Below are positions 14,297 to 64,000 of a stretch of 64,000 bases of DNA, piece by piece. Made by a program: the position numbers and the translations under genes. Position 1 is the first letter of the stretch. Every line of letters starts with the position of its first letter. The stretch spans positions 124,001 through 188,000 of the IMG/VR virus record IMGVR_UViG_3300046665_000548, one strand, 5' to 3'. Under the pieces are notes generated by a model, which was not told the origin of the DNA, ran no database searches, and saw only the letters and a program-made list of their open reading frames with translations.

Positions 14297-14565
14297 CAAT
14301 TTCCCAACGAGAATTCCATTGGCCAAATACTGGTATTTCGCAAAGTGCGATAAGTGCAAAGAAGTCGCGCACGTGATGGTGAATAATCCCATCGCTTCTG
14401 CCAGCTATCTTGGCGCGAAGAGCGGAAACATCCAGGCTTGGTTGACGAAGCATTATGCTTGCGAACTAACATTGGGATGGCGCGACGATCATCTCGATCA
14501 GCTTTGGGACGAAGGCTACACCAACGCCGATCTCCGAATGGATGACGACAAACCATAAATATCGG

Positions 14566-14943
14566 ATGAACTTGTCAGAAGTCATCCAGCCCGAACTTTC
14601 AAATGATTTGCTCGCCCAATTCACTGATGAGCTTGAGCAGCGTCTTGGCCTCAAGACCTTTTCCGTTTTCCTGTCCGGCAACGATATCAAGTTGAACCTG
14701 ATAGTCCTAGGAAAGGACAATCAGAGACTTGGGCGCGGCACTCAGGCCGTCTTCGCTCTGTGTGGACTGGCTGACAAGTATCACAAGCGAATCATCCTCA
14801 CGCCCGCTCAGAAGGACACGCACCATGGAACGACTTCCACTGCGCGGCTGGTCAATTTCTATAAGCGTTTCGGCTTCAAAGAGAACCGTGGGCGCAACAA
14901 GGATTTCTCGATTACTGCCGGAATGTATCGCGATCCTATGTAG
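14566..14943 (+). CDS. GNAT-family acetyltransferase-like protein, late leaderless
   Basis: QRLGRGT motif A, RLVNFYKRFGF; TAAATA 14556-14561 then ATG (MNLSEVIQPE). Confidence 0.7.
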   Translation: MNLSEVIQPELSNDLLAQFTDELEQRLGLKTFSVFLSGNDIKLNLIVLGKDNQRLGRGTQAVFALCGLADKYHKRIILTPAQKDTHHGTTSTARLVNFYKRFGFKENRGRNKDFSITAGMYRDPM

Positions 14944-14995
14944 AATTTGACTACACAACGCCGCTTTAGTAGTCACAAAGGACTCTCTAGCGATT

Positions 14996-15754
14996 GTGAA
15001 ACAGATGTCTGCAAAATTCGATAGCCTCGTTGAACGTTTGGTCAAGAAGATGGGTCTGTCTCAGACTCCAGTTCCTGGCTTCATCATTGGCCTCAGCGGC
15101 ACCGATTCAATCATTGCATTCCTCTTGGCTTACCGTGCATGTGAGCGCCTCGACCTCCCTCCTGGTGGGATGGCTGATCGCCTTCTTGGCGTTCACTACA
15201 AATCTGGCGATAAGGTCGATTGGTTCGAGGCTGAGATCATGCCTTGGCTTGCTGCCGAATGTCCCAAAGCTACTTTGATAACTCGCGTGCCACGTGGCGG
15301 AAACGCCGATCCTCAGCGTTGGGCGGATATGCACCTACGTGCGTTAAATTCAAACGTTGATGAGAACACCACGCGATACACGCCGCACGATGCAGGCAAG
15401 AACTATTGGGTTGCCGGGACCATCAACGCTACTGAAAAGGTTCTTGGCAAGTTCAGCATGCTCGCGGAGAGCGTCAGCATCCAACTTATTCAGACCGTGT
15501 GGAAGAGCGAGATCATGGCTCTTTGTGAAGAGTATGGTGTGCCGTCGATTGCGATGGAGATGTCGCGTATTCCTGATTGTCTATGCGGGCGTGACGAGAT
15601 CGCGGCCAACAACATTGAACTTATTGATCAAATCATTCGTCACAAGGTGAAGCCATCTGAGCATCCACCTGAATTGCTCGATACGCTGTTCTCGTACATC
15701 GCGATGGTCAGGTCAGAAAATGACTTTAAGAATCGCATTCCGTACACAATTTGA
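14996..15754 (+). CDS. NAD synthetase (NadE)-like PP-loop protein
   Basis: IIGLSGTDS PP-loop, GTINATE...LG, WKSEIMALCEEYGVP. Confidence 0.65.
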   Translation: MKQMSAKFDSLVERLVKKMGLSQTPVPGFIIGLSGTDSIIAFLLAYRACERLDLPPGGMADRLLGVHYKSGDKVDWFEAEIMPWLAAECPKATLITRVPRGGNADPQRWADMHLRALNSNVDENTTRYTPHDAGKNYWVAGTINATEKVLGKFSMLAESVSIQLIQTVWKSEIMALCEEYGVPSIAMEMSRIPDCLCGRDEIAANNIELIDQIIRHKVKPSEHPPELLDTLFSYIAMVRSENDFKNRIPYTI

Positions 15755-15875
15755 GCAGTCGAGCTTTACGAATTTACTAAAAAACCTTCTCTCGCGCCTT
15801 GACTAACTTCACGTTCTGGTAGACTTTACGCGTGCCGGGCGATTCCGGTGTGGTCAGCAACCAGGACGGGGAAAG

Positions 15876-17466: not shown

Positions 17467-17821
17467 ATACTTTATTCTGTGTGCTCTTGCGGTGTCGGCC
17501 ATCTCTTTGACGGTCGCCCGCACGAAGATCACAATGCAGGCAAGGGACTGGGCATTGGATCGATCTCCAATGCTCGGACACCTTTTGGGTTGCCCTTATT
17601 GCTTGTCGCACTGGGCGGCGTTCTTCGTAGCGTTCACCTTTCCCTACCAGGGCTTGGTGCATTTCGTGATCCTGACGTTCGGCCTCATTGGGGCTAGCGC
17701 GATTATCACTGCACTGGTCGTGCATTTCTTGCTCAAGCAAGAAAACGAGATCGAGTATCTTCGAGAAAAGCTCACGGAGTCTCGTGATATGATCCAGTCG
17801 CTACTCCCCAACGAAGACTAG
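17450..17821 (+). CDS. DUF1360-like membrane protein
   Basis: LGHLLGCPYCLSHW motif, TM helices; GAGGAG SD. Confidence 0.65.
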   Translation: MGVFAEYFILCALAVSAISLTVARTKITMQARDWALDRSPMLGHLLGCPYCLSHWAAFFVAFTFPYQGLVHFVILTFGLIGASAIITALVVHFLLKQENEIEYLREKLTESRDMIQSLLPNED

Positions 17822-18228
17822 CGGTTATCGAATTCGAATTTGGCGTATCCGACTGACTTTCTGCCGGTGATCCTGAATCCTTTGGTGATCCGCAGAAAGT
17901 TTGGTACGTCCTTGATGGCCCAGTCGTGGTCACCGAGTGGAATCCACTCGCACTGGATATCGCCGTCTTTGTCTGGCGTCACGATGATGATAGCCACCTC
18001 TCCATAAATGTGAAGACCCTGGCTCATTGGCGAATGGGTCGCTTCCATAGCATCCCAATAGTATTGATTCCCAGCCTCATCGATCAGACCGCGCAATTCG
18101 GTGTGCATCTTAAGCCCGGCGAGGAATTGCGTTCGGGAAGGGTTCGCGTACACCCTCACGTTCTTGTTGAAGATTTGTATCTGGAGGATTTTACCCTCGG
18201 TGAGGGTCAAGACTTCACGTATACGCAT
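17818..18228 (-). CDS. late leaderless hypothetical protein (paralog of 20176-20601)
   Basis: TAAATA 4 nt upstream; MRIREVLTLTE; NP...LRGL.D. Confidence 0.7.
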   Translation of the reverse strand: MRIREVLTLTEGKILQIQIFNKNVRVYANPSRTQFLAGLKMHTELRGLIDEAGNQYYWDAMEATHSPMSQGLHIYGEVAIIIVTPDKDGDIQCEWIPLGDHDWAIKDVPNFLRITKGFRITGRKSVGYAKFEFDNR

Positions 18229-18235
18229 CCGATAT

Positions 18236-18742
18236 TTAGGCTCTGTATCGATCAATTACCGCGAAGCATCGTGCGAGGTCTGGCATCATCTGCGTGGCCT
18301 CGATTTTGAAGCGGTCGTATTCCATTGGCTTCTGAATCTTGATTGCTCGGATAGCTTTCACGACGCCCTGAACGGGTCCGACAATCCGTTCCTCATATTC
18401 AGAATATGTTGGCGAGCCGCTTTTGAAACCGTCATCGAACGGCACGATCTTATGACGTTGCACGAGAATGTTGCGGTCGAAGACAATCACCGCGCCGCAT
18501 ACAGAATTTCCTGAGGGAAGGCATTGGATCAACTGATCTTCGATGTCGGTATCTTCGAGATCGATGAGCGTTCTGGTTGTTGCGAATTTCGAAGCGATAG
18601 CGGGTGATCGCGTGAGGCTTGCTGATCGAGCGCCTTCTGCGGTCAGTCTATCCGTTTCAATGATACGTACGAGCCATGGTAAACTGGTCCCGTGGTACAA
18701 GACAGATTGTCCAACATCTTCGTTGAGTTCGCGTACTAGCAT
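18236..18742 (-). CDS. ART-like protein, late leaderless
   Basis: LYHGT...SLTRS...EYEE; TAAATA 4 nt upstream; MLVRELNE. Confidence 0.6.
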   Translation of the reverse strand: MLVRELNEDVGQSVLYHGTSLPWLVRIIETDRLTAEGARSASLTRSPAIASKFATTRTLIDLEDTDIEDQLIQCLPSGNSVCGAVIVFDRNILVQRHKIVPFDDGFKSGSPTYSEYEERIVGPVQGVVKAIRAIKIQKPMEYDRFKIEATQMMPDLARCFAVIDRYRA

Positions 18743-18774
18743 CCGATATTTAGGATGTTCGAGTAAATACTTTC

Positions 18775-19041
18775 ATGGATATTCGTGCAATCATGAACCT
18801 CATTGAAGGTTCTTCAATCTACCCGTCGAAGAAGCATGGATCAGACCATGATTACGATGATAAGCATCTCGCTGCGCTAGAAAAAGCAGGCGTCGGTAAG
18901 GGTCCTTCTATTGAGGATCAGAAGAAGGAACGCGACGACGCCAAAGAGCGTGTTGCTGACAAGCGCGAAAAACGCGCCGTTTCCGAAGAAGAGCGCGTCC
19001 AGGTTCGCGAGTGGTTAGATCGGATTCTCGATAACCGCTAA
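18775..19041 (+). CDS. late leaderless small charged protein
   Basis: TAAATA 5 nt upstream; MDIRAIMNLIE. Confidence 0.7.
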   Translation: MDIRAIMNLIEGSSIYPSKKHGSDHDYDDKHLAALEKAGVGKGPSIEDQKKERDDAKERVADKREKRAVSEEERVQVREWLDRILDNR

Positions 19042-20099: not shown

Positions 20100-20175
20100 T
20101 TTGTAATCCCACGGTGTATTGTTTCGACTCAATCTACATCATTTCGATATTCAAGCAAGCGAAGTAAATACTCTC

Positions 20176-20601
20176 ATGAATATGCGAGAGATCATGAACC
20201 TGACCGAACGAGCTTCGGCGGTCAGGGTGACGACCCGATACGGCGACGAGAAAAAGGTTGTGGTTCATCGCAATCCTACCGCTATGGACCTTCATGCGTT
20301 CTTCTCAAATAAGGGCGATCTACGTGGTTTGTTGGACGTATCTAGTGGTACCGTTTTCTGGTGGGCTGCGGAAGAAGCTGTTCATTACGACGTGATCGAC
20401 GCGCTCGGGCTGGATAACTCGAAGGCTCTCTATGTGTATCCGGAGAGTTCTCCCGAAGCCGAATACTACGAACGCAATACTGGACGCCAGCCCCACGAAG
20501 CTGTTCTGTTGTATCCTAATTTGGATCAGAAAGTTGTTTTGAGCAATCGTTTCATCAAGTCTTACATGGAAAGCGGAATGTTTGATCCGCAGCGATACTG
20601 A
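20176..20601 (+). CDS. late leaderless hypothetical protein (paralog of 17818-18228)
   Basis: TAAATA 5 nt upstream; MNMREIMNLTE. Confidence 0.7.
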   Translation: MNMREIMNLTERASAVRVTTRYGDEKKVVVHRNPTAMDLHAFFSNKGDLRGLLDVSSGTVFWWAAEEAVHYDVIDALGLDNSKALYVYPESSPEAEYYERNTGRQPHEAVLLYPNLDQKVVLSNRFIKSYMESGMFDPQRY

Positions 20602-20638
20602 CGCTTGACGAAATTGCAATCTGTCGTAGATTGCGTGA

Positions 20639-21262
20639 GTGAAACATCCCCTGACATTCAAGCGGGCTCTCGATACCGAGGGCGACAAAAATCGCGGTTG
20701 GCGCGTAGACCGGCTCGACGCGTTCCTGCATGGTCAGGAAGTCGGCTATCTAAAAATGTCCTATATTCCAAGTGATCGTTTCCGACGCTATTATCCGACG
20801 ATATTCAACTATATGGATCAAATCCTCGGTAAGCATGTTCTTCCATATGATCGGCGGACTGCTCTTTATGTTGAATTGTTCGCGCCGGAATTGAAGAAGC
20901 TTCTCTGGTATAGCCAGCACGGTTGGTCGTCCACTGAGCCCGAGGGCACACGCGTAGAGCTTCTACGGATGGCCACTCAGCGCGAGCGCGAGCTTCTTGA
21001 GGGGCGCTTAGGAAAGTCCTTCAAGCAATTCAAGGCTTTCCACGTGAACAAGCCGATTGTGGACTATATCAATGTGGATGTGCGTCGCCAGGGTATTGGC
21101 ACGGCGCTGTATTTCGAGGGTGCCCGCTGGATGTCCGAGCGGCGCATGAAGCTGTATCGGTCGGGTATTCAAACCGACGAAGCCAAGATGGCTTGGAACA
21201 AATTTACTCAAGACGGGAACACTGGCGAGGATCGTCGCGGGATGTTCCTGATCGCCCAATAA
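20639..21262 (+). CDS. GNAT-family acetyltransferase-like protein
   Basis: VDYINVDVRRQGIGTALY; TTGACG-N16-TAGATT promoter 6 nt upstream. Confidence 0.7.
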   Translation: MKHPLTFKRALDTEGDKNRGWRVDRLDAFLHGQEVGYLKMSYIPSDRFRRYYPTIFNYMDQILGKHVLPYDRRTALYVELFAPELKKLLWYSQHGWSSTEPEGTRVELLRMATQRERELLEGRLGKSFKQFKAFHVNKPIVDYINVDVRRQGIGTALYFEGARWMSERRMKLYRSGIQTDEAKMAWNKFTQDGNTGEDRRGMFLIAQ

Positions 21263-22100: not shown

Positions 22101-22102
22101 CA

Positions 22103-22549
22103 ATGTATGTGTTGTGGATCATCCTGACATATTGGTTTGGCATCGTCGTCCATGAACTTGGCCACTACGTTGCGGCCAAGTCTATCGGAATGATGGTCTC
22201 GCACGTAGAGATCGGATCGGGAAAGTTGCTTTACCGGTTCACGATGTTTCACGATAACTGGCGTGTCTACATGTTGCCGAATCGGGCGTTCGTGGCGATG
22301 TTCGTGTCCGGAAAGCAATGGAAAAATCTCGTCTCGTTCGCCGCAGGACCATTTGCATCGTTTTCGTTGGCCCTTGTATTGTGGTGGTTTGGTCTTTCGT
22401 ATTTGGCAGTGATCCCGCTCTATCAAGGCGCGTTGAACTGCATCCCGTTCAAGACCAAACATTTCAATTCAGACGGATACAACATCCGCAAGGCATGGCG
22501 GAAGCGTAACGAGAAAGCCTATCCGAAATACATGTATTCGACGGAGTGA
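22103..22549 (+). CDS. M50-family peptidase (short)
   Basis: HELGH, AAGP, NCIP...SDG. Confidence 0.75.
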   Translation: MYVLWIILTYWFGIVVHELGHYVAAKSIGMMVSHVEIGSGKLLYRFTMFHDNWRVYMLPNRAFVAMFVSGKQWKNLVSFAAGPFASFSLALVLWWFGLSYLAVIPLYQGALNCIPFKTKHFNSDGYNIRKAWRKRNEKAYPKYMYSTE

Positions 22550-23024: not shown

Positions 23025-23546
23025 TGGACTATATCAAAGGCATTTCACTGTTAATCGCTCCAATTGTTTGCGTAATCCTACTATTCTTGGCAGCTATGGG
23101 CATAGATAAAGGATTGGATGCCCAGCTAGGCCCCATGGTGTGCACCGAGAAATCCAAAATCAAAGAAATCACGTCACTCCGTTATAGGAGTGCTACTGTC
23201 CTGCTTGAGAATGGACAAAGTGTAGATGCTTATCAGGCAACGCTAAAGCCTGGAGATTACTGGTGTCTGAAAAGAGAACGAGTAAAGGTAGGTGAATGAC
23301 ATGGACCACGAGCTATTCTTCAACAAAGTCATGGAGCAGTTGCCTCCGGCCGATGGGATGCCGCTTATGCGAGCTTACATTATGAAGCATGGCGTAAACC
23401 CGGCTAACGCGCCTGCGCGATTTATCTCTGATTACGGGGCTCGCGCGTACGTCAACGGCAAACTGAACATTAACGAGCCCGCCGATCCTCACGCGGCGCT
23501 CGAAGAATTTCTTCACAGGAATAACCTAAAGGGCTAAATAAGCCCC

Positions 23547-24068
23547 ATGGACATGCGCACAATCATCGACGCTTCTCGGGCGTCTCCGCTTACAGAGAAA
23601 AAAGTCGGTGGTTCTGCGTGGGTGTTGATTGCCTGTCCAGATACCAGCGAAGTGCTATTGGCCAAGCGAGCCAAGTCAGCAAACAATCCAGGACAGTGGA
23701 ATCTATTTGGCGGCGGGCTCGAATACGGAGAGCAAGCCGTAGATACTGCATTGCGTGAGCTTGGCGAGGAAGCCGGAATAACCATTAACGTGGATATGCT
23801 CAAGTACAAGGGCTCCCACAACGGCATGAGCTTCTTCGTCCTGTATGCGCCACGCAATATGGTCAACTCTGCGATCCGCCCGAACCGCAAAGAAGTAGCG
23901 AAGATCAAGTGGTTTCCTCTCACCGCGCTCCCTAACGATCTGCATAAAAGCACGAAGATGTTCATCAAGGTTTGCACCCGACCAAAGAAGGTTTTCGGAG
24001 AGAGCCTGACAGAGACAATGGACCTGATCGAGTTCGAGAGTATCCTAACGGCCTCTCAGAAGACTTGA
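23547..24068 (+). CDS. Nudix hydrolase, late leaderless
   Basis: Nudix box GGGLEYGEQAVDTALRELGEEAG; TAAATA 6 nt upstream; N-terminal MDMRTII...PLTE. Confidence 0.9.
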   Translation: MDMRTIIDASRASPLTEKKVGGSAWVLIACPDTSEVLLAKRAKSANNPGQWNLFGGGLEYGEQAVDTALRELGEEAGITINVDMLKYKGSHNGMSFFVLYAPRNMVNSAIRPNRKEVAKIKWFPLTALPNDLHKSTKMFIKVCTRPKKVFGESLTETMDLIEFESILTASQKT

Positions 24069-24435: not shown

Positions 24436-24630
24436 ATGACCGAGCGTTTTTCCGCACATATCGGAAAGCCATACGACGAGATCGAAGACGAAATTAAATC
24501 CGAAAACCCAGGGATGAAGGTACATTTCCTCCCCGAGTTCTCCATCGTGACGATGGATTATAATACGAAACGTATGCGGGTTTGGTACAACAAAGACACG
24601 AAGAAGGTGAGCAGGATCACCATAGGATAA
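24436..24630 (+). CDS. protease inhibitor I78/potato-I family protein
   Basis: IVTMDYNTKRMRV reactive-loop motif. Confidence 0.7.
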   Translation: MTERFSAHIGKPYDEIEDEIKSENPGMKVHFLPEFSIVTMDYNTKRMRVWYNKDTKKVSRITIG

Positions 24631-24642
24631 TCGAGGACCGCC

Positions 24643-26562: not shown

Positions 26563-27840
26563 CGAAGCTTCTCTTGATGACCGCATGAAAGCGGCTGGTA
26601 TGTTCACGATTGACCAAATGATGGGCATCACCCCGCTCAGTCGTTTCACGATCCATGCCGGGATGACCGATCTCAAGTTCTTCGAAGCATGGCTGGATCG
26701 CCGGGCGCGCGAGATGCTGATGATGCGCGTCAAGTATGAGCTTGGTGATAAGCCGAAAGACGACATGTACGAATGGGTCGTGTCGCATGCCGCCTCGCTC
26801 ATGGAGGTTCGGGCCAATTTCAAAGCGGCGCTGGCAGGGGGAAACCCTAGCCGAGCCGACGATGATCCAATACCAAATAATTGACGTACAGCCGCGTCGT
26901 GATAGACTACGGGCATGAACAACCGTAGTTACGCCATGAAACGCGACAGTTTTGATTATTTCTTTTGGGGGCTTGGTGCTTTCATCGCCTGCCTCTTTGC
27001 TTTGATTATCTTCGTCGTTGTTGACGAGGCTGGCGGCACCGATCAGTCAACCCTGTCCGGCAAGGTTACGGGACGATATTACACCCCGCCTCAGACCCGC
27101 ACCACGGTGGACGGCCAGGGTCGAGTTTCGACCACGACTGATCCGGAAGAGTTTCACGTCTATGTCGAGGTTGAACAGATCGGCAATCAGAACCTCTCCA
27201 CCGATAGCCGCATCTACGGACGCGCACTAATTGGTGCTCCGGCAACGGTCGTCGGACGTGCTGGATGGATGACCGGCAACATCTACTATCGACTGAAAAG
27301 CATCGGCTCGCAGGGCGGCTCTACCGTCCAGTTCTGATGGCTTGACATTTGACAATTTTCTGTTAGTTTTCGTAGACAATTCACAGAGGGTCGGATGGGT
27401 AATTTGGAAAACACGTCGGAACGCATTAAGGCCGTGAAATCGGCCTTTAGTATCCTTGGATACGACGTGACCAGCGATCCCATTGAAGGTGCCGAGGAAG
27501 CCTTTTTGGCTGAGATTTCGCAGGTCTATATCAAGACTGAGAATTTCTATAGGAAGATTCTCAAAAAGAATCGGTACACGATGTTCAGCGACCGGTCTCT
27601 CGCGGACTTGCATAAACAGTTCCCCGAACCCGCTTGGGGGATCGAGGTTCGCCATGCGTCGGAGAAGGAAGCTCTTGAGCAAAAGATCGCTCGCGCCAAG
27701 GTAGACTTAGAGCAAGCGATTGAAGAACGCGATTCGGCTCAGCGTCGGATTGACGAGGCTCGAAGCGCCTTCCATGTGGCCGAACGCGCGCTGTTAAACT
27801 TTGAAGTTAACGCAACTGCGGCAGCTATTACTGCGAGGGC

Positions 27841-31751: not shown

Positions 31752-32333
31752 ATGTTGCGCGGCGTTATTTTAGTGTTTTTGTGTTTCTCTTCGATGGCCA
31801 ATGCGGCCGGTTATTTGAAAGTCGGAGAGGTAACGCGAGCGCCGCGCGGCTGGATAGAATTCTGCTCTGAAAATCCGAAAGAATGTGTCGTGGGCCAATA
31901 TCAGGCCCGCGACATCATTATTACGCAGACGGCGTGGAAGGATTTGGTACGGGTCAATCGTTGGGTCAACGAGACCATCAAGCCAATGACCGACATGGAC
32001 CATTGGGGTGTGATCGAGAAGTGGTCGCTACCGACTGATGGTTACGGCGATTGCGAAGATTACGTCTTGCTCAAGCGCAAAATGCTGATCGACGCTGGCT
32101 GGCCCCGCGAGGCGCTGCTTGTCGCCGTGGTGCGCGACAAGAAAAACGATGGCCATGCCGTGCTCATCGTGAAAACCGACAAAGGCGAGTATGCTCTGGA
32201 TAACCAGAACGAAAACGTTTTGCCGGTTGGAGAAACAGGGTATCGTTACGTAAAGCGTCAGTCGCAGACTGACGAAAATTCCTGGGTCTCGCTCGGTTAT
32301 TCGACGGGTCCGGAAGCTGTAGGCAGCAACTGA
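31752..32333 (+). CDS. bacterial transglutaminase-like cysteine proteinase (BTLCP, peptidase C93)
   Basis: Signal peptide, GDCEDYVLLKR, GHAVL, LDN catalytic triad. Confidence 0.92.
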   Translation: MLRGVILVFLCFSSMANAAGYLKVGEVTRAPRGWIEFCSENPKECVVGQYQARDIIITQTAWKDLVRVNRWVNETIKPMTDMDHWGVIEKWSLPTDGYGDCEDYVLLKRKMLIDAGWPREALLVAVVRDKKNDGHAVLIVKTDKGEYALDNQNENVLPVGETGYRYVKRQSQTDENSWVSLGYSTGPEAVGSN

Positions 32334-33476: not shown

Positions 33477-33485
33477 CGGCATGCT

Positions 33486-33516
33486 CTCAAGAGTGTGTCG
33501 CCCACACACTTTTGAG
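33486..33516 (+). promoter_or_regulatory. 13-bp hairpin sequestering the leuS Shine-Dalgarno
   Basis: CTCAAGAGTGTGT/ACACACTTTTGAG includes GAG of GAGGA. Confidence 0.7.
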
Positions 33517-33522
33517 GACGAA

Positions 33523-40076: not shown

Positions 40077-40136
40077 CACCTATTTAGAACCTTCAACTTA
40101 TTGCGTTTACTCCTCATCTGGCGATATTCTGGTTCG

Positions 40137-43982: not shown

Positions 43983-44057
43983 GAGCGCGTAGTTCAGCGG
44001 AAGAACACCGCCGTCCTAAGGCGGGTGTCGCAGGTTCAAATCCTGCCGTGCTCTCCA
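43983..44057 (+). tRNA. tRNA-Arg(CCT)
   Basis: Loop GT-CCT-AA, A20, U73, CCA; TAAATA at 43970-43975. Confidence 0.9.
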
Positions 44058-44569: not shown

Positions 44570-44570
44570 T

Positions 44571-44801
44571 CTAGGCTCCGATTAGTTTGGTGCGCGCCTG
44601 GATCAGTTTGACCCATGGTGTCGCATGAAAAACGCCCATCAGCACGTACATGACCGTCATACCGGTCAATACCGAGCCGGACCCTGCTACGCACAGCAGG
44701 TCAGGCGGTCCCCAGAAGATATTGAACAGAGCCATGAAGGCGAAAGTCGGTGTTGCTGCCAGGGCCAGCAATTCGATTTTTAACCAATTTGGCATAGGCA
44801 A
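44571..44801 (-). CDS. small two-TM membrane protein of proteobacterial type
   Basis: LALAATPTFAFMAL...GMTVMYVLMGVFHATPW. Confidence 0.6.
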   Translation of the reverse strand: MPMPNWLKIELLALAATPTFAFMALFNIFWGPPDLLCVAGSGSVLTGMTVMYVLMGVFHATPWVKLIQARTKLIGA

Positions 44802-44864
44802 ATCTCCAGGAATCGGTTATTTATTAGCGAACGGAACTCGTCTTTACTGGAGCTATCGGCCGAT

Positions 44865-53945: not shown

Positions 53946-54608
53946 TCATTTCTTGAACTGGATAGGTTGCTCGGCAGGGTCTATCATGACTAATCCGGCA
54001 TATGCAGCCCAAGTCTTGGGGTCGCCAAGATTCTTTTCCAAAGCCGCAAGATGAATTTCAACCTGGGGGAAATTCATTAGACCAACCTCTACGGCGGCCT
54101 GTCTGGCGTTCCACTGCGCCTCGTTATAGACAGTAAGCGCGGCATGAGCGTTCGCGTAAACTCGACCAGCCTGTTTCAGTTCTTCGAAAAACTGTTCGTA
54201 GGTCCCGTGATAACGTCCGTCTTCTTTTCTGTATTCGAAATTATTACGGATATTGTCCATGATTTCTCGTTCATGGCCGTATTCGTTCCTGAGGTAGCGA
54301 AGAGCTTTCCTGACCTTGGGCGCAACCGTTCCGTAGCCGCAGTTGCCGTGAACAACGTGTTCGCCATCAGCCATGCGATGAGTCAAATCACCGATATGCT
54401 CGGTATCCCAAGCGTAAAGACCTGCGCCGTGGTGAATATTAGGATTGCCGTTACAGGCACCGCCCATATTTTCAGGCTTTCCCAACTGACCTTTCGCGAG
54501 ACCATCGAACGCTTTGATAGCATTTGATTTGGCTGGCTCCGGTAGAGCCAAGATGACGGCCCATCCGCGAATAACCTCTTCTTCATTGATCAGATCACGA
54601 TATCGCAT
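53946..54608 (-). CDS. late leaderless hypothetical protein
   Basis: TAAATA 4 nt upstream; MRYRDLINE. Confidence 0.7.
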   Translation of the reverse strand: MRYRDLINEEEVIRGWAVILALPEPAKSNAIKAFDGLAKGQLGKPENMGGACNGNPNIHHGAGLYAWDTEHIGDLTHRMADGEHVVHGNCGYGTVAPKVRKALRYLRNEYGHEREIMDNIRNNFEYRKEDGRYHGTYEQFFEELKQAGRVYANAHAALTVYNEAQWNARQAAVEVGLMNFPQVEIHLAALEKNLGDPKTWAAYAGLVMIDPAEQPIQFKK

Positions 54609-54822
54609 GCGATATTTAGTGCTTCTCTACCTTGCGAACGAGTTGAGTCAGTTGATCGGATGTAATGTCGTATACGCGTAAATTCGGCGTTGGTGCGAGA
54701 AGCCAGTATTTCGAATCGAACTCGGACGAGCACGAGGAATCAGCGCCCATGGCTGCTGCGAGTAACACGCATCCTGGGCGCATTAGCGTAATGTCAAAGC
54801 ATATTTTCATCTGAACAGTCCA

Positions 54823-55095
54823 TTAGCCCCATCGGAGCTTAAAGAGTGCGGCGTCACGTGCCCGTCTGAAATAGAAACTCGATTTGTACCATGTCCAGTT
54901 AAATCCTTCATCGTACATATCGTGAAAGATTCCACCATCCTGATAATGGATCGATCCGGTAATTGGAGTTTTAAAGATATGCTCACCCCACTCGCCAGCC
55001 TCCTGTAGAGGTCCGAATTCATTGAGCGTTATGACGTGAGGTAAGCGCTTCTTAAGCCAATCATCAAGCTCAGACTGTTTAACCCGCGTCGGCAT
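54823..55095 (-). CDS. paralog family protein (FYFRRARDAALFKLRWG)
   Basis: Shared C-terminal motif. Confidence 0.65.
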   Translation of the reverse strand: MPTRVKQSELDDWLKKRLPHVITLNEFGPLQEAGEWGEHIFKTPITGSIHYQDGGIFHDMYDEGFNWTWYKSSFYFRRARDAALFKLRWG

Positions 55096-55903
55096 GGAAC
55101 ACCGGATCGGCGTCTTCGAAGATCATTTCCACTCGGTTTTTTATCTTTAGTATCTTTGGGAAGTGGAACGTCCGTAGACGACTTCTCACAACGGGACCAG
55201 TCGGCCGTCTTGCCTCTGGAATGAGAACTAATTTCTCAGCAGGAAGCTCAGCCTCGAACACCTCTGAACGAATGAACGTCCCGCGTTTGAACGCTTCGGG
55301 ATAATCCTCGAACGTCACACCCTTCTCGCTCAGCAATTCAACCATTCCCTGACGAGATACGCCATTAAGCCGCTTGTGGCTCAAATGATGATGTGCGGCC
55401 ATCGAAACGGAATTGCGTTCGGCGTCGAGCACTCTCCAGAGAATTGCATTGGCAGCTTCTTCCTTTGACGGAAGCTCAAACACCCGAGCGTCGAAATGCG
55501 GAAGCTTGTCAGCATTCTTCGCGAACTGTTCGCTGCTTGCTAGCACAGCCTGATTGAAACGGGCCGTCGCCATGCCAGCAAGGATCGAGCATAGCTTCTG
55601 CACCTTGCCGCCAAACATCAGTTCCTGAGCCGGGTTCTCGCCATCGAGGTACCAAAGCAGAGAAATTTCATCCGACTGCGTATAGCCGATAACCGCATTT
55701 GTTTTCTGAACCAAATAAGATGCGGTCTCAACCATGCAGGCGTGAAACTCGGCGTCGAACGGGCGGACCATTCCCTTAGTGAACTTAGAGAAACCTCGGC
55801 CGTCAATTCGAGCATAGAGCGGCTGCCGCGCATCGAAACGAAGGGAGGTCTGCGCCGACTCGTACTGTTTCATACGGTCGCCCAAATCATCTTTAAACAT
55901 CAC
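55079..55903 (-). CDS. tRNA(His) guanylyltransferase Thg1-like protein
   Basis: RMKQYE, RIDGRGFSKFT, GYTQSDEISL, FGGKVQK, FDARVF. Confidence 0.93.
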   Translation of the reverse strand: MMFKDDLGDRMKQYESAQTSLRFDARQPLYARIDGRGFSKFTKGMVRPFDAEFHACMVETASYLVQKTNAVIGYTQSDEISLLWYLDGENPAQELMFGGKVQKLCSILAGMATARFNQAVLASSEQFAKNADKLPHFDARVFELPSKEEAANAILWRVLDAERNSVSMAAHHHLSHKRLNGVSRQGMVELLSEKGVTFEDYPEAFKRGTFIRSEVFEAELPAEKLVLIPEARRPTGPVVRSRLRTFHFPKILKIKNRVEMIFEDADPVFHADAG

Positions 55904-56568
55904 TGTCCTCTCGGAGGAGACCTTTTCGTTTCAGTCCGGCAACCTCGTCGTCAGGCACGAATCTTTTCATCCCGTTGATGAACGTGACTTTCGTGTAGCT
56001 GGTTGTCGTCCCACCCGTGTAAAGATCAAGCTCGATCTCGCGCTTGATCTCGTCTAGTACACGCGACCGTTCTTCGTTGAGTTCAACGACAAGCTTTTCA
56101 TTCAGCCGGAGTGCTTCAACGGCAGCAAGAAACTCACTCACGTTGCCTTCATTACGAGGATCAGCGTGTAGGGCTTCGACAGCCTTCCGGTGCCGCTCAC
56201 GCGCCTTCTCGCCATCAACCTTCCACGCTTTCGTGTAGGCTTCGTTAGCAAGGTCGAAACGTTTTCGCTCGTCTTTGGTCTGGGCTCGCATTACTTTACT
56301 CGAAAGCATGTATGATAGGGACGAACTAGCTGAAAATACTCGTCCTTTTTGGGCTCAGATGGCTTCGCGGACTTTTCATCTTTTTCCGCGTCATCTTCTT
56401 CTTCGGTAGCGTGCTCTTGGGCTATACCCGTGTGAGTCTTTACCAAAGCGAGGCCCGCTGCTTCGCACAAGTCCTTGGAAGCGAAACCGTCGAAACGATC
56501 TCGCTCCAAGCGCACGTCAGCACCACTCGATTGCTGGATGAAGAGCAGCGTGAATAGGAGCGTCCACA

Positions 56569-56988
56569 TTAGACGAGCGCATCCTTGACTACCTGCGACG
56601 CAACCTTGCCGTCATAACGACCACCGTAGTTGTCCTTCAGGTGCTTCATCACGATGCCCATGTTCGCGCTGGGGTTCTCTCGGCGGATGACGAGAACGAC
56701 TTCACGAAGCTCATCCTGGCTCATCTGCTGCGGCAGATAAGCTTCGAGAATTTTGATTTCGGCCGCGATCTTGTCCGAGGGGGCAAGACCCATGGTCTCG
56801 CGGGCATTCTTGAGGAACTTTTGAACCATCGCGATAGCCTCCTCCTCGGTGGTCTCGCGATTACCCGCGTCCTTTCCGACGCGATCCGCTTCGCCCTTCA
56901 GGGCGGTAAGCAGACCGATGGCGGTCTCGTCCTTTGCCTTGCGAGCCTGGAGTTGATCGGCGCGAATGCGCTCCATCAGCGTCGTCAT
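56569..56988 (-). CDS. GatB/YqeY domain protein
   Basis: ARKAKD, EIKILEAYLPQQMS, MGIVMKHLK...G.YDGK. Confidence 0.9.
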   Translation of the reverse strand: MTTLMERIRADQLQARKAKDETAIGLLTALKGEADRVGKDAGNRETTEEEAIAMVQKFLKNARETMGLAPSDKIAAEIKILEAYLPQQMSQDELREVVLVIRRENPSANMGIVMKHLKDNYGGRYDGKVASQVVKDALV

Positions 56989-57030
56989 GATACGGTCCTC
57001 TATATTAAAGAATGCGTGTGTACCAGAAAA

Positions 57031-57573
57031 TCAGCTTTTGGCAACATTGTTTCGTGAATTTGGTGCAGAAGAACCACTGCACAGGAGTGGTACCAGAGGG
57101 CGCTTCGCCAGATTGCTGTTGGCATATCGGTTATCGTGAGAGACCTCTTCGCCAAGCCAGTCCGGCGTAACAAAGTCTTCATCCTCTCCCCCAAGCTCGA
57201 TTTCGGCCGTCACAAGCCCGTCGTGCGCACCTTCGAACACATCCACATGCCAGACATGCGAGGGATCATCTTTAACCAACACGTGATATCGCGTCTTGGA
57301 AAGAACGTACTCGCACAATTTGAGCATTTCGTTCGCGTCATCGTATGGCACCTCATATTCGTACTCGGCGCGAGATACCCCGGATGTCTTGCCCTTGACT
57401 GTCAAAAATCCCTGACGCCGGTCGCCGTCCACGACTGTACGAACGCGCACGACCGATGGCTTGGTTTGAAGGTAGCCCTGGCAGAGCTTTTCGCCGTTGG
57501 CGCTTTTCCAGCAGCCAATCTCCCGCCAGCCATCACTCTTAACTAGGAATTTTCTCTCAATCTCTACAGGCAT
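57031..57573 (-). CDS. CYTH-domain triphosphate tunnel metalloenzyme
   Basis: EIERKFLV, QGYL, VRVR, TVKG, EYEY, AEIEL. Confidence 0.92.
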   Translation of the reverse strand: MPVEIERKFLVKSDGWREIGCWKSANGEKLCQGYLQTKPSVVRVRTVVDGDRRQGFLTVKGKTSGVSRAEYEYEVPYDDANEMLKLCEYVLSKTRYHVLVKDDPSHVWHVDVFEGAHDGLVTAEIELGGEDEDFVTPDWLGEEVSHDNRYANSNLAKRPLVPLLCSGSSAPNSRNNVAKS

Positions 57574-57620
57574 TCATTTTCCCCAACTAAAGTAAGTTCT
57601 GATCCCTCCTAAATAGCAGG

Positions 57621-58097
57621 ATGATGACCATTCGGGAAATACTGTTGTTGCTTGAGAGCGAAGAAATTCAGCCTCCGGATCACGTTCGGGCGGCGGAGAT
57701 GGATTCCAGGCTGCGCGACGTTGTGAGCGCTCTCCCACCGGTTACAGAGTGGGTCCCGCTTTTGAGGTCTCAAGCATGGTTCTCTCCGTTGCATTTCAGC
57801 GGCAACGAGGCAAATGCCATGGACTTCCAACCGAACGAATACGTATATTCACCAGTGGTCGATATTAGAACTGACCCGACCGCAAGAAGCGCGCATTATC
57901 GTAGAGGCGTGAAGAAGTATGTCGCGGCATTACGGCGCGGCGATACCTTGCCTCCGATCACGTACGTGTGGAATGCCCATTACTTAAAATGGAACATGCT
58001 CGACGGCAACCACCGTTCACAAGCTTACGCAGAGACAGGCACCTCAAAGATGCCTGCCATCTTTGCTTACCCTATTCGGGCTTTACTCCAACGGTAG
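57621..58097 (+). CDS. ParB/Srx-like domain protein, late leaderless
   Basis: LPPI...MLDGNHR; TAAATA 5 nt upstream; MMTIREILLLLE. Confidence 0.65.
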   Translation: MMTIREILLLLESEEIQPPDHVRAAEMDSRLRDVVSALPPVTEWVPLLRSQAWFSPLHFSGNEANAMDFQPNEYVYSPVVDIRTDPTARSAHYRRGVKKYVAALRRGDTLPPITYVWNAHYLKWNMLDGNHRSQAYAETGTSKMPAIFAYPIRALLQR

Positions 58098-58469
58098 GTC
58101 GCGATCTCGTTCAATAGGGGAATTGAGGAAGGCCGTCTTATCAGGACGAGTCGCTTTGTCCTCACGGGTCTCTCGTTTACGGCGACGCATCTGCTTGGCA
58201 ACCTTCTCCATGGCTACACCAAACGCGACGTAGATATCCTTGTGGGAATGTTCGCCAATGAATGGAGGTATACTTCCAACGTGAACGTTTACTGTGCAAA
58301 CGTAAGACGAGCCTTCTTGGCGGAAATGCACGGATGCAGATGTTATTCGATTGAACCATTTCGAAGCTGTCAGGACGATAGTGCTACGAACATGTTCGGG
58401 GAGAGCATCTCCTAGATCAATATGAGCCCCTTGAACTGTGATCTCTTTATCGACACCTTGAAGCTTCAT
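58083..58469 (-). CDS. hpf: ribosome hibernation promoting factor (HPF/RaiA, S30AE)
   Basis: ITVQGAHIDLGDAL...DIYVAF..AMEKVAKQMRRRKR. Confidence 0.85.
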   Translation of the reverse strand: MKLQGVDKEITVQGAHIDLGDALPEHVRSTIVLTASKWFNRITSASVHFRQEGSSYVCTVNVHVGSIPPFIGEHSHKDIYVAFGVAMEKVAKQMRRRKRETREDKATRPDKTAFLNSPIERDRDLPLE

Positions 58470-58870
58470 GCATTCTCTCCATTGGGTGACATATTTGTGG
58501 TTCGATTCCACGATGCCGTCAAGGACCCCTGAACTAAATATAACCGTGCAGATCATTGGAACAAATCGTCGCGAAGGAATTGACTGGGTTCAAGATAAAC
58601 TCGGTCCTATGTGCCCGCGCACCACGGCCGAAACAACTTTCTTGGGGCTTCTCAAGGAAGGTCAGATCATCGGCTGCAAATCCGCATTCATTCTAGCGGA
58701 AGACATGGGAGACGATGATCTTCGCAACATCGCTACCGATGAAGTAAAAAAGCGAATGTCCGAACAGGACAAGAAGCGACGTAAAGCACCTCGCGCGAAT
58801 AACAATTTCGCAGTAAAGCGAGACGGCAGCGAGGACGATGGTTCTTTGATCACCGTCCAAGTGCCAAACC

Positions 58871-60608: not shown

Positions 60609-60612
60609 GACC

Positions 60613-60650: not shown

Positions 60651-60667
60651 CGTTGGTATACTAGCCT

Positions 60668-60928: not shown

Positions 60929-61093
60929 TCAGCTTTCGAGATTAACTGCGTCGATGCGATACATGCTCTGCTCGACGCCAGCCGCAGCAGCGACAGCCGC
61001 AACCTTCTGCTGAGCTTTGATGTTCGTGGTGTGCACGCTGATCACAGTAACTCCGGTATTGGTCTTGCGGGAGACGACGTATACGATCTTCAT
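60929..61093 (-). CDS. small late leaderless protein (54 aa, not in ORF track)
   Basis: TAAATA 6 nt upstream of the ATG; MKIVYVVSRK. Confidence 0.55.
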   Translation of the reverse strand: MKIVYVVSRKTNTGVTVISVHTTNIKAQQKVAAVAAAAGVEQSMYRIDAVNLES

Positions 61094-61102
61094 GGTGATT
61101 AT

Positions 61103-61324
61103 TTATCCCTGATGTTGATGCGAACGTAAGCTCCTGGCCTTGTCGGCTAGACGCATTACGATGTTTGCTGAGTAGAATGGAAACAGAGCAGGGATTAACG
61201 CGTGTATGATCGAAGCCACCCCGGCAACGACTAATAAAACGCCAGCACTCAATGCGAAACAGGCATGAGCCATATAAGACTTGCCAGCTTCTTTGAGATG
61301 TTTAGCCGCAAAGGTTTCCCACAT
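61103..61324 (-). CDS. DUF6356-like small membrane protein
   Basis: KHLKEAGKSYMAH..FAL...IHALIP; TAAATA 5 nt upstream. Confidence 0.65.
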   Translation of the reverse strand: MWETFAAKHLKEAGKSYMAHACFALSAGVLLVVAGVASIIHALIPALFPFYSANIVMRLADKARSLRSHQHQG

Positions 61325-61354
61325 AACCCTATTTAGAGCGATGTAAATAGTCGC

Positions 61355-62833
61355 ATGACAGACGTTATTACGCGAAACTTGATTTCGCAGACCATTGAAA
61401 TCCATGAGCCATCTGGAGAGATCGTCCGTTACGAAGTCATAATTCGAATGATTGATTTCTATCGGGATTGGCTTGGCAGTGTTGGGATCGTTCGCGGCCA
61501 ACGCGGCATCATCTGCTTGCCCAACAGTGCAAACATGCAGGCATTGTTCTTCGCGTGTTTGGAGCTAGGGATACGGTTCATTGGTGCAGAGGAAAGGGAA
61601 TTCTACAAGTTTCCACGCTATCGAGTAGCCAACGTCGATTTTGCAATCACCTGTTCGGACTGGAAAGAGGAGATGGACGACCTTCCTTACCCTTTGCATG
61701 TTATGCCTGATGTAGCAGATATCAGCGGCATCGAGCTTCGGACACACATTGACCCAGAGGTCGAACCAGATGAGCCAGCCATCTTGGCGATCACCTCCGG
61801 AACGACCGGTGCTCCAAAAATTATTCAACACACGCACCAAACAATTTTGCCAGCAATCCGCCGCGCCATGGAATGGTACGACCCCAAAGATCGAGTTCTG
61901 TTCTACATGAACCTCAACCATCTTGGCGTGCTTACTATCTTTACCCTGCCAGTGCTCCTCACCGGCTGTCGGATCGTTCTCTGTCGCAACAATTTCGTAG
62001 AGCCACTTATCGAGGGGCTAACGACACGAAGCCTTGGCGGAATAGATAAGCTGCTCATGTTTGATTGGTCTTGGGGGCGGATCGTCAACGCGTATAAAGG
62101 CGAGCAGCCGTTGCTCGGTACAAACAAACCAACGGTGATAACTGGCGGAAAACCAATCCCGCCATCGTTCATTGAGAGCTTGCTGATCAACGGGGCAGGA
62201 GAAGTCAAAGTCGCTTATGGAATGACCGAAGCCCCGCCACCAGTGATAGTGAAGTCTGTGACCTCGGTCGAAGGTTACAGTCGTTCATTTCTGGGCCAAC
62301 CCCTGGAAGGCTGGCGTACAATCGTCATGGCAAACGGATCGCTTCTCCTACGAGGAGACGGCATTGGTTTAGACAATCGGGGCAGGTCTTTGAGCGACCC
62401 GCTTGGATGGTTTATGACCCCTGACTTGTGCTGGTTGGAGGGCGATGAGATACACATTCGATCCAGGCGAACGATCAATAAACGAAACGGTCAAACCGTA
62501 TTCCTTGACGACATTATCGCTGAGATGTTTTTCAAGCCGCTCGATGTGCCTTTTGTAATCTGTCCGCTTCAAACGAAAGAGGACGAAGACCTCAAAATAT
62601 GTGCGTTCACGGGTCGCAATCAAATTATGATCGATGGTGGACCCACGAACCTGGAAACGATCAACTCGATAATTCGCTCCACCATGATACCCGAGTACCA
62701 GATCGACCATCTGTTTCTGATGGATGAGATACCCGATAACGGTCTAAAGCCAGATCACACAAAGCTACGAAAGATTGCGCTTCAGACCATTGCGGAACAG
62801 GGAGAAAAAGGGGAATATCTGGTGAAGATTTAA
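61355..62833 (+). CDS. AMP-binding (ANL superfamily) adenylate-forming enzyme
   Basis: TSGTTGAPK, YGMTEA, C-terminal K; TAAATA 5 nt upstream. Confidence 0.85.
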   Translation: MTDVITRNLISQTIEIHEPSGEIVRYEVIIRMIDFYRDWLGSVGIVRGQRGIICLPNSANMQALFFACLELGIRFIGAEEREFYKFPRYRVANVDFAITCSDWKEEMDDLPYPLHVMPDVADISGIELRTHIDPEVEPDEPAILAITSGTTGAPKIIQHTHQTILPAIRRAMEWYDPKDRVLFYMNLNHLGVLTIFTLPVLLTGCRIVLCRNNFVEPLIEGLTTRSLGGIDKLLMFDWSWGRIVNAYKGEQPLLGTNKPTVITGGKPIPPSFIESLLINGAGEVKVAYGMTEAPPPVIVKSVTSVEGYSRSFLGQPLEGWRTIVMANGSLLLRGDGIGLDNRGRSLSDPLGWFMTPDLCWLEGDEIHIRSRRTINKRNGQTVFLDDIIAEMFFKPLDVPFVICPLQTKEDEDLKICAFTGRNQIMIDGGPTNLETINSIIRSTMIPEYQIDHLFLMDEIPDNGLKPDHTKLRKIALQTIAEQGEKGEYLVKI

Positions 62834-62847
62834 CGCCGGGGATTTAA

Positions 62848-63135
62848 ATGACTCTCAGTGAGATGGAAACACTCTTCGAGAAACACGACGGGGAATACGG
62901 CAAATACGACCGTGTGATACCTAAGGCCAGCGGAAGGCCCGATCTCGATGCTTTCATACTCTTGAACACGCTCTGCCCCGGTAGTGGCGACATTATTTCA
63001 GCGGCAGAGCACGACGAATTCTGGATAAGCGTTGACCCTGCCGATTTCGCCAAGGTTGCCGACGAGGGTCACATCCTTACGCTAATCCGCTGCGGCGTCT
63101 TCTTGATAGATGATGGTTTTAAGATGAATGCCTAG
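62848..63135 (+). CDS. hypothetical phage protein
   Basis: 95-aa ORF after the ANL gene. Confidence 0.55.
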   Translation: MTLSEMETLFEKHDGEYGKYDRVIPKASGRPDLDAFILLNTLCPGSGDIISAAEHDEFWISVDPADFAKVADEGHILTLIRCGVFLIDDGFKMNA

Positions 63136-64000
63136 CGGCAGAGTCCATCGCAGTAAGCTGGGCCTGTTCACGTCGTTGGTCAGGTACGGTGCGCTGGAGT
63201 TCTGGATTGAAGATCACGATTTCCATCGATTCTTTCTCATCTGCATATTGGTAGACATCGTTGGTGGAAGTAAACACCACAAAATCGTACTTTCCGAACA
63301 CCGCATCGCTAATCTTCGGAAGAACGTCTTCGTAAGCTTCACCGATCTGCTCACCAAAAATAATTTGTATCAGAGCGGCGCTCTCATAAAGACCCTCGTA
63401 TGGGCTCATGCGTGCGAGAAGCTGGAAAAGTTGGATACGAAACTGGCTGATCTTGCGGCCCTTCTCGTAATCGCGATCCTTGGGGCCAAACTTTACTTTG
63501 TTCTTAAGCTCTGCCAGGAGCGCGGCATCATCGAAGCGAGTCGCGTTCTGTCGGACAGTCTGCTCCATTTGTGGGGACCAGTCGCTGCGAGATTTTTGAA
63601 GGCATGTGATGAGTGCGTTCAGCACATCATCACGAGACATCTTCTTGTTTGCCGTGGAAACGAGCGGCGATCCGTTGTCCCAATGATCGTAGTTCTCACC
63701 GCATCGCTTGAACGCGGCTTTCAAAGCGCGAAGAACTAGGCTGAAACCGGTGTTCTTCCACGAGGCGTCATTGATGCGCTTATATCGGCAGCCCTGGGGG
63801 ATAACAACGCGAAACACGTTCGGGCCAAACTGAGCCGCAAAGCGTGGATTGTTTGTCGCATACATTCCGTTACCGAGGGGATTCCAATACTGCTCGCCTT
63901 TGTCGGCCGCGTGCGGGTTGAACTTATCAAAGGCAGCACTCTTCGTGCCGTGATAAAAAACCCACTCTCTCTTATTGACCTCTTCGTCAATGACAATCTC
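63119..64000 (-). CDS. ART-like protein, 5'-truncated by the window edge
   Basis: Frame open to the window end: EIVIDEE...FYHGT..AFDKF...LGNGMYATNN..FA. Confidence 0.6.
   Translation of the reverse strand, partial: EIVIDEEVNKREWVFYHGTKSAAFDKFNPHAADKGEQYWNPLGNGMYATNNPRFAAQFGPNVFRVVIPQGCRYKRINDASWKNTGFSLVLRALKAAFKRCGENYDHWDNGSPLVSTANKKMSRDDVLNALITCLQKSRSDWSPQMEQTVRQNATRFDDAALLAELKNKVKFGPKDRDYEKGRKISQFRIQLFQLLARMSPYEGLYESAALIQIIFGEQIGEAYEDVLPKISDAVFGKYDFVVFTSTNDVYQYADEKESMEIVIFNPELQRTVPDQRREQAQLTAMDSAARHSS

Follow-up and report, generated by a model that had tools for sequence, protein, structure and literature searches.

Scattered TAAATA-led genes on a 608-kb contig of a T4-superfamily phage carry a candidate capsid-targeting tag on diverse enzymes

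The window analysed here is a stretch of 64,000 nucleotides (nt) at positions 124,001-188,000 of a 607,744-bp contig (JGI 3300046665, Ga0495661_0000003 = IMGVR_UViG_3300046665_000548), and its source, to judge from gene content, is a phage of the T4 superfamily. The subject is a set of genes, scattered over both strands, that begin a few nt after the hexamer TAAATA and whose products share a short N-terminal sequence, hereafter the tag, resembling the leader of the internal proteins of phage T4. The window has a GC content of ~52% and holds 16 tRNA genes together with accessory genes (aspartyl-tRNA synthetase, class I synthetase, AAA ATPase, radical-SAM enzyme and others). In all, ~94 kb of the 608-kb contig was read (the window, the next 9 kb and the head-module stretch), and the counts of tagged genes cover this DNA. 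The nearest cultured relative found is the Agrobacterium phage Atu_ph07, with 47% identity by the sheath protein.

An earlier, sequence-only reading of this DNA had listed nine TAAATA-led starts, and all nine (9/9) are present with spacers of 4-6 nt, leaving no room for a Shine-Dalgarno (SD) sequence. The spacer between TAAATA and ATG is 4 nt at 14566(+), 18228(-), 18742(-), 40076(-) and 54608(-), 5 nt at 18775(+), 20176(+) and 57621(+), and 6 nt at 23547(+). The gene calls of JGI, which are independent, pick the same ATG starts as these open reading frames (ORFs). The first of the nine, at 14556-14943(+) with its box at 14556-14561, encodes a GNAT-like protein of 125 amino acids (aa) with the weakest of the tags, MNLSEVIQPE. 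Behind the box at 18238-18233 lies the gene (17818-18238, minus strand) of a 136-aa protein without Pfam or PHROG match, starting MRIREVLTLTE/G (the slash marks the predicted cut). Next to it stand the gene of a 168-aa protein with a YHGT motif and the start MLVRELNE/D (18236-18752, minus strand; box at 18752-18747) and that of an 88-aa protein starting MDIRAIMNLIE/G (18764-19041, plus strand; box at 18764-18769). A 141-aa protein starting MNMREIMNLTE/R (20165-20601, plus strand; box at 20165-20170) and a 173-aa Nudix hydrolase with the long tag MDMRTIIDASRASPLTE/K (23535-24068, plus strand; box at 23535-23540) follow. The other three are a 236-aa protein resembling the ART-PolyVal type of ADP-ribosyltransferase (ART), MRYSEIKE/A (39366-40086, minus strand; box at 40086-40081), a 220-aa protein with a weak Transglut_core match (E = 0.044), MRYRDLINE/E (53946-54618, minus strand; box at 54618-54613), and a 158-aa ParB/sulfiredoxin-like protein, MMTIREILLLLE/S (57610-58097, plus strand; box at 57610-57615).

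Two further genes had been expected to fit the pattern, and both do. The 169-aa protein encoded at 44569-44060(-), without Pfam or PHROG match, starts MRNWIDLASTLNE/S and has no adjacent box; its gene is the second behind a 76-aa ORF whose start lies 16 nt after TAAATA at 44823-44818 (whole unit, 44060-44823, minus strand). The gene at the window end (63119-64000, minus strand), with the C-terminal 293 codons in the window, encodes P0003, an ART-PolyVal-like protein of 297 aa. In the 9 kb fetched beyond the window its start, MRYSEIVIDE/E, was found 12 nt past the window end behind TAAATAAGACTATG (TAAATA-N5-ATG). The same 9 kb holds a divergent TAAATA-led gene pair with the starts MKIFEVASK and MRLDEMFLPEE. 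One 140-aa ORF at 42969-43391(+), with a normal SD and no TAAATA, has a start, MAAIVKEVLLVE/P, that fits the tag pattern, and may be a tagged gene outside this promoter class.

The cargoes behind the tag had been described as unrelated, and Pfam, PHROG and Atlas searches returned a Nudix, a GNAT, at least three ART-PolyVal-like proteins and a ParB-like protein as well as proteins of no family. Tagged proteins are 88-297 aa long and hold at most one recognised domain each. The assignment is firm for the 173-aa protein (Pfam NUDIX, 9.9e-19; phrog_1198, 1.8e-19), which also weakly matches phrog_15528, a portal-Nudix fusion. The 125-aa protein is matched weakly by Pfam as GNAT and placed there by Atlas (features 0.95, TM 0.87); it matches a segment of phrog_10691, a 3925-position profile of a phage giant protein, at 9e-28. 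When its predicted structure is matched to GNAT proteins, the match starts at residue 4-17, and MNLSEVIQPE may therefore belong partly to the fold. For the 236-aa protein (Atlas features 0.93, 181-183 shared) the structural neighbours are ART-PolyVal, RES, the AcrIF11 ART and ART-PolyVal+MuF_C. P0003 is assigned as an ART by Pfam ART-PolyVal matches in its orthologues and by its Atlas neighbours; tblastn of P0003 against cultured phages gave no match. The 168-aa protein shares its YHGT motif with the 236-aa and 297-aa proteins. The 158-aa protein falls among ParB_N clusters (Atlas 0.95, 180-184 shared features) with a weak PHROG match to ParB, and five other tagged proteins have no recognisable family in Pfam or PHROG. 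The phrog_10691 and ART-PolyVal+MuF_C clusters tie these cargo domains to giant or head-associated proteins. Polyvalent, MuF and portal fusions contain domains of the ART, ParB, Nudix and GNAT kinds, and T4 Alt is itself a packaged ART (PMC5512222). By this comparison the cargo domains are of the types predicted or known to enter cells with phage DNA.

TAAATA occurs 28 times in the window against 14 expected. The arrangement TAAATA-N3-6-ATG was found 20 times on the two strands, whereas 200 simulations with a first-order Markov model gave 0.98 on average and never more than 5. TAAATA is the most enriched hexamer 3-8 nt before possible start codons. Across 22 aligned sites no -35 element is conserved, and the base before TAAATA is usually C or G. 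The T4 late promoter, TATAAATA, depends on gp55 and gp33 and contains TAAATA. The element here resembles it in having a TAAATA core, being of -10 type without a -35 element, and preceding head and tail genes, and differs in that six bases are conserved instead of eight (bases 1 and 2 of the T4 octamer are unconserved) and in that a gp55 homologue is confirmed only in relatives. On the same contig TAAATA lies 20 nt upstream of the 941-aa gene adjoining the portal gene, and 48 nt upstream of a 363-aa acidic head-module gene, with an SD between. In relatives (L010, L012-L015 and Atu_ph07), the tail-sheath and tail-tube genes have (C)TAAATA 30-56 nt upstream, and a GGAGG-type SD lies between box and gene. 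The label "late" that the sequence-only reading had given to TAAATA is reasonable because the box precedes head and sheath genes too, and we take it to be a T4-late-type promoter element, presumably active late.

Atu_ph07 encodes a gp55-like late sigma factor (PMC6102473). This protein (L106:6472-7305) matches those annotated as gp55 late sigma in cyanophages and in Rak2-like phages; 1,708 relatives of it were counted in the library searched. Many metagenomic gp55-like proteins reach 450-980 aa, with the match split into two or three separate parts, suggesting inteins or other insertions in this small transcription factor.

A second class of promoters in the window is sigma70-like, TTGAC(N)-N16-TAGATT, found at 20605-20641, 26881-26917 and 53944-53907(-) and also at 21268, 24065, 24398 and 27342; these promoters are probably early or middle. 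Three of them end 6-7 nt before a GTG or ATG and the others have a normal SD leader. Leaderless genes are thus not limited to the TAAATA class. The hexamer GTAGAT, tried as a second special box, was rejected since it is the -10 (TAGATT) of these promoters with TTGAC at -35. Sites 12666 and 25093 were likewise removed from the TAAATA class: with TTGAC(T/A) at -35 they look like sigma70-type promoters of the tRNA clusters.

The TAAATA box also stands before tRNA genes: 7 nt before the 5' end of tRNA-Arg(cct) (43970-44057, plus strand), 8 nt before tRNA-Val at 14221 (box at 14207, plus strand) and 7 nt before tRNA-Arg at 60081 (box at 60094, minus strand). The distance of 7-8 nt to three tRNA 5' ends places the transcription start a few bases past the box. 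With the ATG 4-6 nt away, the mRNAs of tagged genes would then have essentially no leader, and we infer that they are leaderless, as fits the geometry of box and ATG. To our knowledge, such closeness of the box to ATG codons and tRNA 5' ends is not a feature of T4. The three TAAATA-led tRNAs may likewise carry almost no 5' leader and need little or no trimming by RNase P. At 13644-14213 a TAAATA box is followed by a tRNA-like 5' half (GTTTAGCTCAGTAGGAC) without an ARAGORN call, then directly by a 179-aa ORF (weak C2H2 zinc-finger match), after which come the following TAAATA box and tRNA-Val; a mobile ORF may have interrupted a tRNA gene here.

The tag can be written roughly as M-x-hydrophobic-R-[E/D]-hydrophobic-hydrophobic...hydrophobic-x-E, with a length of 8-17 aa. 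Its core is R-[D/E]-hydrophobic-hydrophobic-x-hydrophobic-x-E, or the shorter R-E-hydrophobic-x-E, and it ends in LTE, LIE, LNE, IKE, INE, IDE or LLE on cargoes that are otherwise unrelated. The pattern as first written by the sequence-only reading held up in a count: among the 13 TAAATA-led ORFs that reach 60 aa it is present in 9, and among ~604 other ATGs with at least 60 open codons in 3; the associated Fisher p = 5e-15 is indicative only, because the pattern was written after the sequences had been seen. In the AF2 model of P0003 (mean pLDDT 86), residues 1-7 fall below 50 and the fold begins from about residue 10, placing the tag outside the predicted fold.

Codon usage and orthologues both bear on what is selected at the N-terminus. 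Among 27 tagged starts the Arg residue is encoded by five codons (CGT 7, CGC 6, CGA 4, CGG 2, AGA 1), and all four Asp/Glu codons are used for the acidic residue. Orthologues of 36-71% identity on contigs of 549, 520, 447 and 183 kb keep the tag pattern with changed letters. The 19 orthologues of P0003, on contigs of up to 549 kb, keep it in starts such as MRLREILME, MRYHEILDE, MRITEILNE, MHIRELLE..RLDE, MDIRHIITLVE and the like. The 168-aa YHGT protein has an orthologue, P0002, in a relative with 42% GC; the bodies are 71% identical, and the tag of P0002 is a different instance of the pattern, MKIQEIIDLVE/G, behind TAAATATTTGCATG (TAAATA-N5-ATG). In a relative ~88% identical, the differences listed for the tag of gene 18775 include three synonymous changes and the replacements I>L and I>V. 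A 549-kb relative (L007) has at least 10 tagged genes in a 21-kb stretch, among them an operon of five consecutive tagged genes (10001-13887) whose stops and starts overlap and which lack a box next to them; one of the five has a clear SD. The tag is thus found without an adjacent promoter. The varied codons, the orthologues that keep the pattern and the operon-internal tags without a box together indicate that the tag is selected as a peptide.

Eight leaderless TAAATA genes have no tag (radical SAM, AMP-binding enzyme, DUF6356, PhoH, GDSL-like, GIY-YIG-like and two small ORFs). Untagged TAAATA-led starts in the window are 11483, 61355, 61324(-), 61093(-) and 58546 (GTG start). The first belongs to the 384-aa radical-SAM protein (11473-12637, plus strand; 4-nt spacer). 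A divergent region at 60929-62833, on both strands, has boxes at 61344(+) for the 492-aa AMP-binding enzyme, at 61335(-) for a 73-aa DUF6356 protein and at 61105(-) for a 54-aa ORF, without a canonical tag. Since tags occur without the box and boxes without the tag, promoter and tag are separable modules, often but not always together. The modular cassette of promoter plus tag envisaged by the sequence-only reading is thus borne out in that the two recur together; they are not one inseparable unit, the tag being found on operon-internal SD-led genes and the promoter on untagged genes and tRNAs.

The shared N-terminus might instead be functionless, either as the footprint of a recombining 5' cassette or as a constraint of leaderless translation or of the initially transcribed region. 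An exact 13-mer, TAAATATCGGATG, is common to three starts, as a cassette would leave behind, and in the ~88%-identical relative homology sets in again at 20164, a single base ahead of the box that leads gene 20176. A shared 5' region of the T-even ip genes reportedly recombines, as Repoila et al. are said to have described in 1994. T-even internal proteins share only the leader, and ip genes are recognised by this shared N-terminal signal (PMC12373910). Against these points, codons vary freely while residues are kept, orthologues change letters and keep the pattern, operon-internal genes with an SD and no box are tagged, and eight leaderless TAAATA genes are not; we therefore regard a functionless origin as highly improbable. 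A cause at the nucleotide level was rejected on the codon usage, and leaderless translation as the cause of the tag on the operon-internal tags and untagged leaderless genes.

The contig encodes head machinery of T4 type, in agreement with the prohead-protease context that the sequence-only reading had supposed. A search with an S77-protease profile retrieved a head module at positions 359,558-380,181, holding a T4-type portal (Portal_T4, 1.9e-96), a gp21-family protease (L046:9980-10627; Peptidase_S77, 6e-27; phrog_207, 3e-56) and a gp23-type major capsid protein (Gp23, 1.2e-94). In BLASTP the capsid sequence SRLNE/AATAG aligns with T4 gp23 SFLTE/AEIGG, the known maturation cut, and LNE/A is accordingly the predicted maturation site of the capsid protein here. 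The LNE and LTE of these capsid sites are the endings of the tags MLVRELNE, ...STLNE, ...MNLTE and ...LTLTE.

These endings help to weigh the possibility that the motif is a signal unrelated to the capsid, such as a degron or adaptor tag for AAA+ proteases of phage or host, or another intracellular address. The motif is short, N-terminal, disordered and amphipathic, as such a signal could be; an AAA ATPase is encoded in the window and seven Clp-family proteins in Atu_ph07 (PMC6102473), and the number of tagged genes is unusually large for head cargo. The motif ends, however, in hydrophobic-x-E, like the capsid site of the same genome and like all known sites of the gp21 family (PMC5694885), the proven head-targeting leaders of T4 fit the same pattern, and the tagged genes use the promoter of head and tail genes. 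Such an address is, in our judgement, distinctly unlikely.

Head-module proteins themselves have tag-like starts. An 82-aa ORF between portal and protease (TAAATA-N7-ATG) starts MKLFELAQDD, and the 363-aa acidic protein starts MRSILEKAIVHLLNE. Together with a coiled-coil-like (scaffold-like) protein of phrog_10922 they occupy the positions of T4 gp67, gp68 and gp22, to which they have no family match. The tag might accordingly direct proteins to the prohead that are core, scaffold or internal structural components, or that act inside the head, with no injection and perhaps partial cleavage. This is consistent with the two head-module starts, with the similar start of T4 gp22 and with tag-like starts (MDLKQYIAE, MKTLQDYLTE) on virion-structural proteins of phrog_14802 in relatives. 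On the other hand, most tagged proteins of the window are small enzymes, of ART, Nudix, GNAT or ParB-like type, for which a structural role is not plausible, and the enzyme and inhibitor precedents of T4, Alt and the internal proteins, are injected (PMC5512222, PMC12373910), so that we consider a purely head-internal function unlikely.

One of the phrog_14802 starts came from Atu_ph07 (L023, MF403008.1). At 14394-15149(-) an in-frame ATG lies 29 codons upstream of the deposited start of AUZ94910.1, with a good SD and a TAAATA box 32 nt before it. Translation from this ATG gives a longer product with the start MKTLQDYLTE, nearly the T4 leader MKTYQEFIAE, and its family is annotated "virion structural protein" (phrog_14802, via the homologue L014:18300-19076).

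The likeness to T4 internal proteins that the sequence-only reading had proposed was followed in the T4 record itself (AF158101). IPII and IPIII start MKTYQEFIAE/A, IPI MKTFKEF...ITE/A, Alt MELITELFDE/D, Inh MIDKDYIAE and gp22 MLKEQLIAE/A; these tagged proteins of T4 fit the derived pattern. When the pattern derived from the huge-phage tags was run on 45 kb of T4, it recovered IPII, IPIII, Alt and Inh among few chance matches. Both systems have a leader of 10-19 aa on unrelated proteins, a hydrophobic-polar-acidic-hydrophobic-hydrophobic core and a hydrophobic-x-E end, a genome-encoded protease of the gp21 family, a late promoter that includes TAAATA and an ADP-ribosyltransferase among the cargoes. 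They differ in number and layout: at least 12 tagged genes in 73 kb here and at least 10 in 21 kb of the relative, far more than in T4, scattered on both strands as against two loci. Cargoes here are mostly recognisable enzymes, those of T4 small inhibitors, and the box stands 4-6 nt from the ATG without an SD, whereas T4 ip genes have a leader and an SD. A capsid-targeting sequence of the T4 internal proteins was reportedly described by Mullaney and Black in 1996. In T4, leaders of 10-20 residues bring proteins to the core of the prohead and are cleaved off after Glu by gp21 (PMC5694885, PMC3012670).

On balance we favour the reading that a capsid-targeting peptide of T4 type brings the tagged proteins into the head during its assembly and that they reach the next host together with the DNA; the phage thus probably injects an arsenal of enzymes with its DNA. 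In the mechanism we envisage, host RNA polymerase, redirected late in infection by a T4 gp55-like factor, would start at TAAATA. With the box 4-6 nt before the ATG, near-leaderless mRNAs would result and be translated without an SD. The first 8-17 residues would bind the prohead core or scaffold, as the leader of T4 internal proteins and Alt does, and the phage's own gp21-family S77 protease, whose gene is present, would cut the tag after the Glu of the hydrophobic-x-E site. The mature enzymes (ADP-ribosyltransferases, Nudix, GNAT, ParB-like nuclease/NTPase and others) would then travel in the head and act on host targets right after injection.

Several observations weigh against delivery with the DNA by such a tag. 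Packaging is proven for T4, while this phage is uncultured and known here from sequence alone. The tag has Arg where T4 has Gln or Lys and is often one residue longer than in T4, and a number of tags, such as MNLSEVIQPE and MKIFEVASK, are short or atypical. Were the density of the window to hold genome-wide, there would be far more tagged genes than in T4, which is unprecedented and might mean that the tag has another use. Metabolic genes without a tag, and tRNAs, also have TAAATA as their promoter, so that the promoter class alone is no marker of head proteins. A YHGT (ART-like) paralogue at 5243-5629(-) has neither TAAATA box nor tag, and members of one enzyme family are thus not all addressed alike. 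Foldseek of the P0003 model against PDB gave nothing significant, leaving the ART fold unconfirmed there. A single-protein scan for gp55 returned only Atu_ph07 itself, and in a gp55 profile scan this contig was absent from the best 80 of more than 577 loci.

Other phages provide partial parallels. In phiKZ-like phages (SPN3US, 201phi2-1) a gp21-related protease cuts after Glu in small-or-hydrophobic-x-E, and many internal proteins, with paralogues sharing conserved N-termini, are ejected (PMC5694885, PMC7411985). These phages are of another lineage with a virion RNA polymerase, and their propeptides are mostly longer than 100 residues, in contrast to the T4-sized leaders of 8-17 residues here. 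For P1 DarB the N-terminal 30 residues are enough to bring a large enzyme, or a reporter, into the head, from where it is delivered (PMC9024508), but P1 is unrelated and has a single cargo, and there is no sign that a cleavable motif is shared. Polyvalent proteins and MuF toxins have the same domains (ART-PolyVal, ParB-like, with Nudix and GNAT neighbours) and are predicted to enter with DNA (PMC5512222); there, 2-15 effector domains are joined in one polypeptide or fused to a head protein, whereas here the proteins are separate, small and tagged.

The principle, that of T4 internal proteins and Alt, is already known; the expansion to an enzyme arsenal and the leaderless late arrangement are the new part. 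In the searchable literature, whose coverage is incomplete, no description was found of either the expansion onto many enzyme cargoes in huge phages related to Atu_ph07 or the leaderless late arrangement. More tentatively, and with less confidence than we place in head targeting itself, a clade of uncultured 400-600-kb phages of the T4 superfamily may have expanded the internal-protein principle into a distributed arsenal of dozens of tagged enzymes per genome (several ADP-ribosyltransferases, Nudix, GNAT, ParB-like proteins and many others, each address-labelled), whose leaderless late mRNAs would form a class of their own, perhaps tied to the translation genes of such phages. Isolated tag-like starts (MKVKDILIE, MRYRELIKE, MKIRDIISE, MKITEIIQE, MNQRDLLYE), two of them directly behind TAAATA, were also seen at head and tail loci of distant T4-superfamily contigs (L071, L072, L020, L022, L017; GC 33-44%), which suggests that the system probably extends well beyond the clade studied.

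Other genes of the window deserve mention. A run of translation- and RNA-related genes at 55079-58556(-) encodes a Thg1-like tRNA-His guanylyltransferase, YqeY, CYTH and a ribosome hibernation factor (Ribosomal_S30AE), and three aminoacyl-tRNA synthetase genes lie at 33481-34785, 36116-38002 and 44865-46151. Two genes for M50-family (site-2 protease-like) peptidases are found at 2915-3883 and 22103-22549, and a Peptidase_C93 gene at 31752-32333. A 64-aa ORF at 24436-24630 has a precomputed Pfam match to potato inhibitor I, a serine-protease inhibitor unusual for a phage, and merits comparison with T4 Inh, the inhibitor of the prohead protease. Megablast of 12 kb of the window against cultured phages gave no match at the DNA level, and a sheath-based search for the tail module of the contig returned relatives only. 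No RNA or DNA sequencing run holding 6 kb of the window was found; for one gene, only relatives at no more than 13% of words turned up, with no RNA run among them.

Should the tag prove to be a signal for the head, sequence alone would suffice to list the proteins that huge uncultured phages inject as infection begins, and these proteins would be a rich source of anti-defence and host-takeover enzymes. The tag would also be a compact and portable means of loading foreign proteins into very large capsids. A regular class of late genes without an SD, next to tRNAs, aminoacyl-tRNA synthetases and a hibernation factor, offers a concrete case for translation bias in huge phages. The capsid-targeting principle of T4 would then be ancient and scalable across the T4 superfamily.

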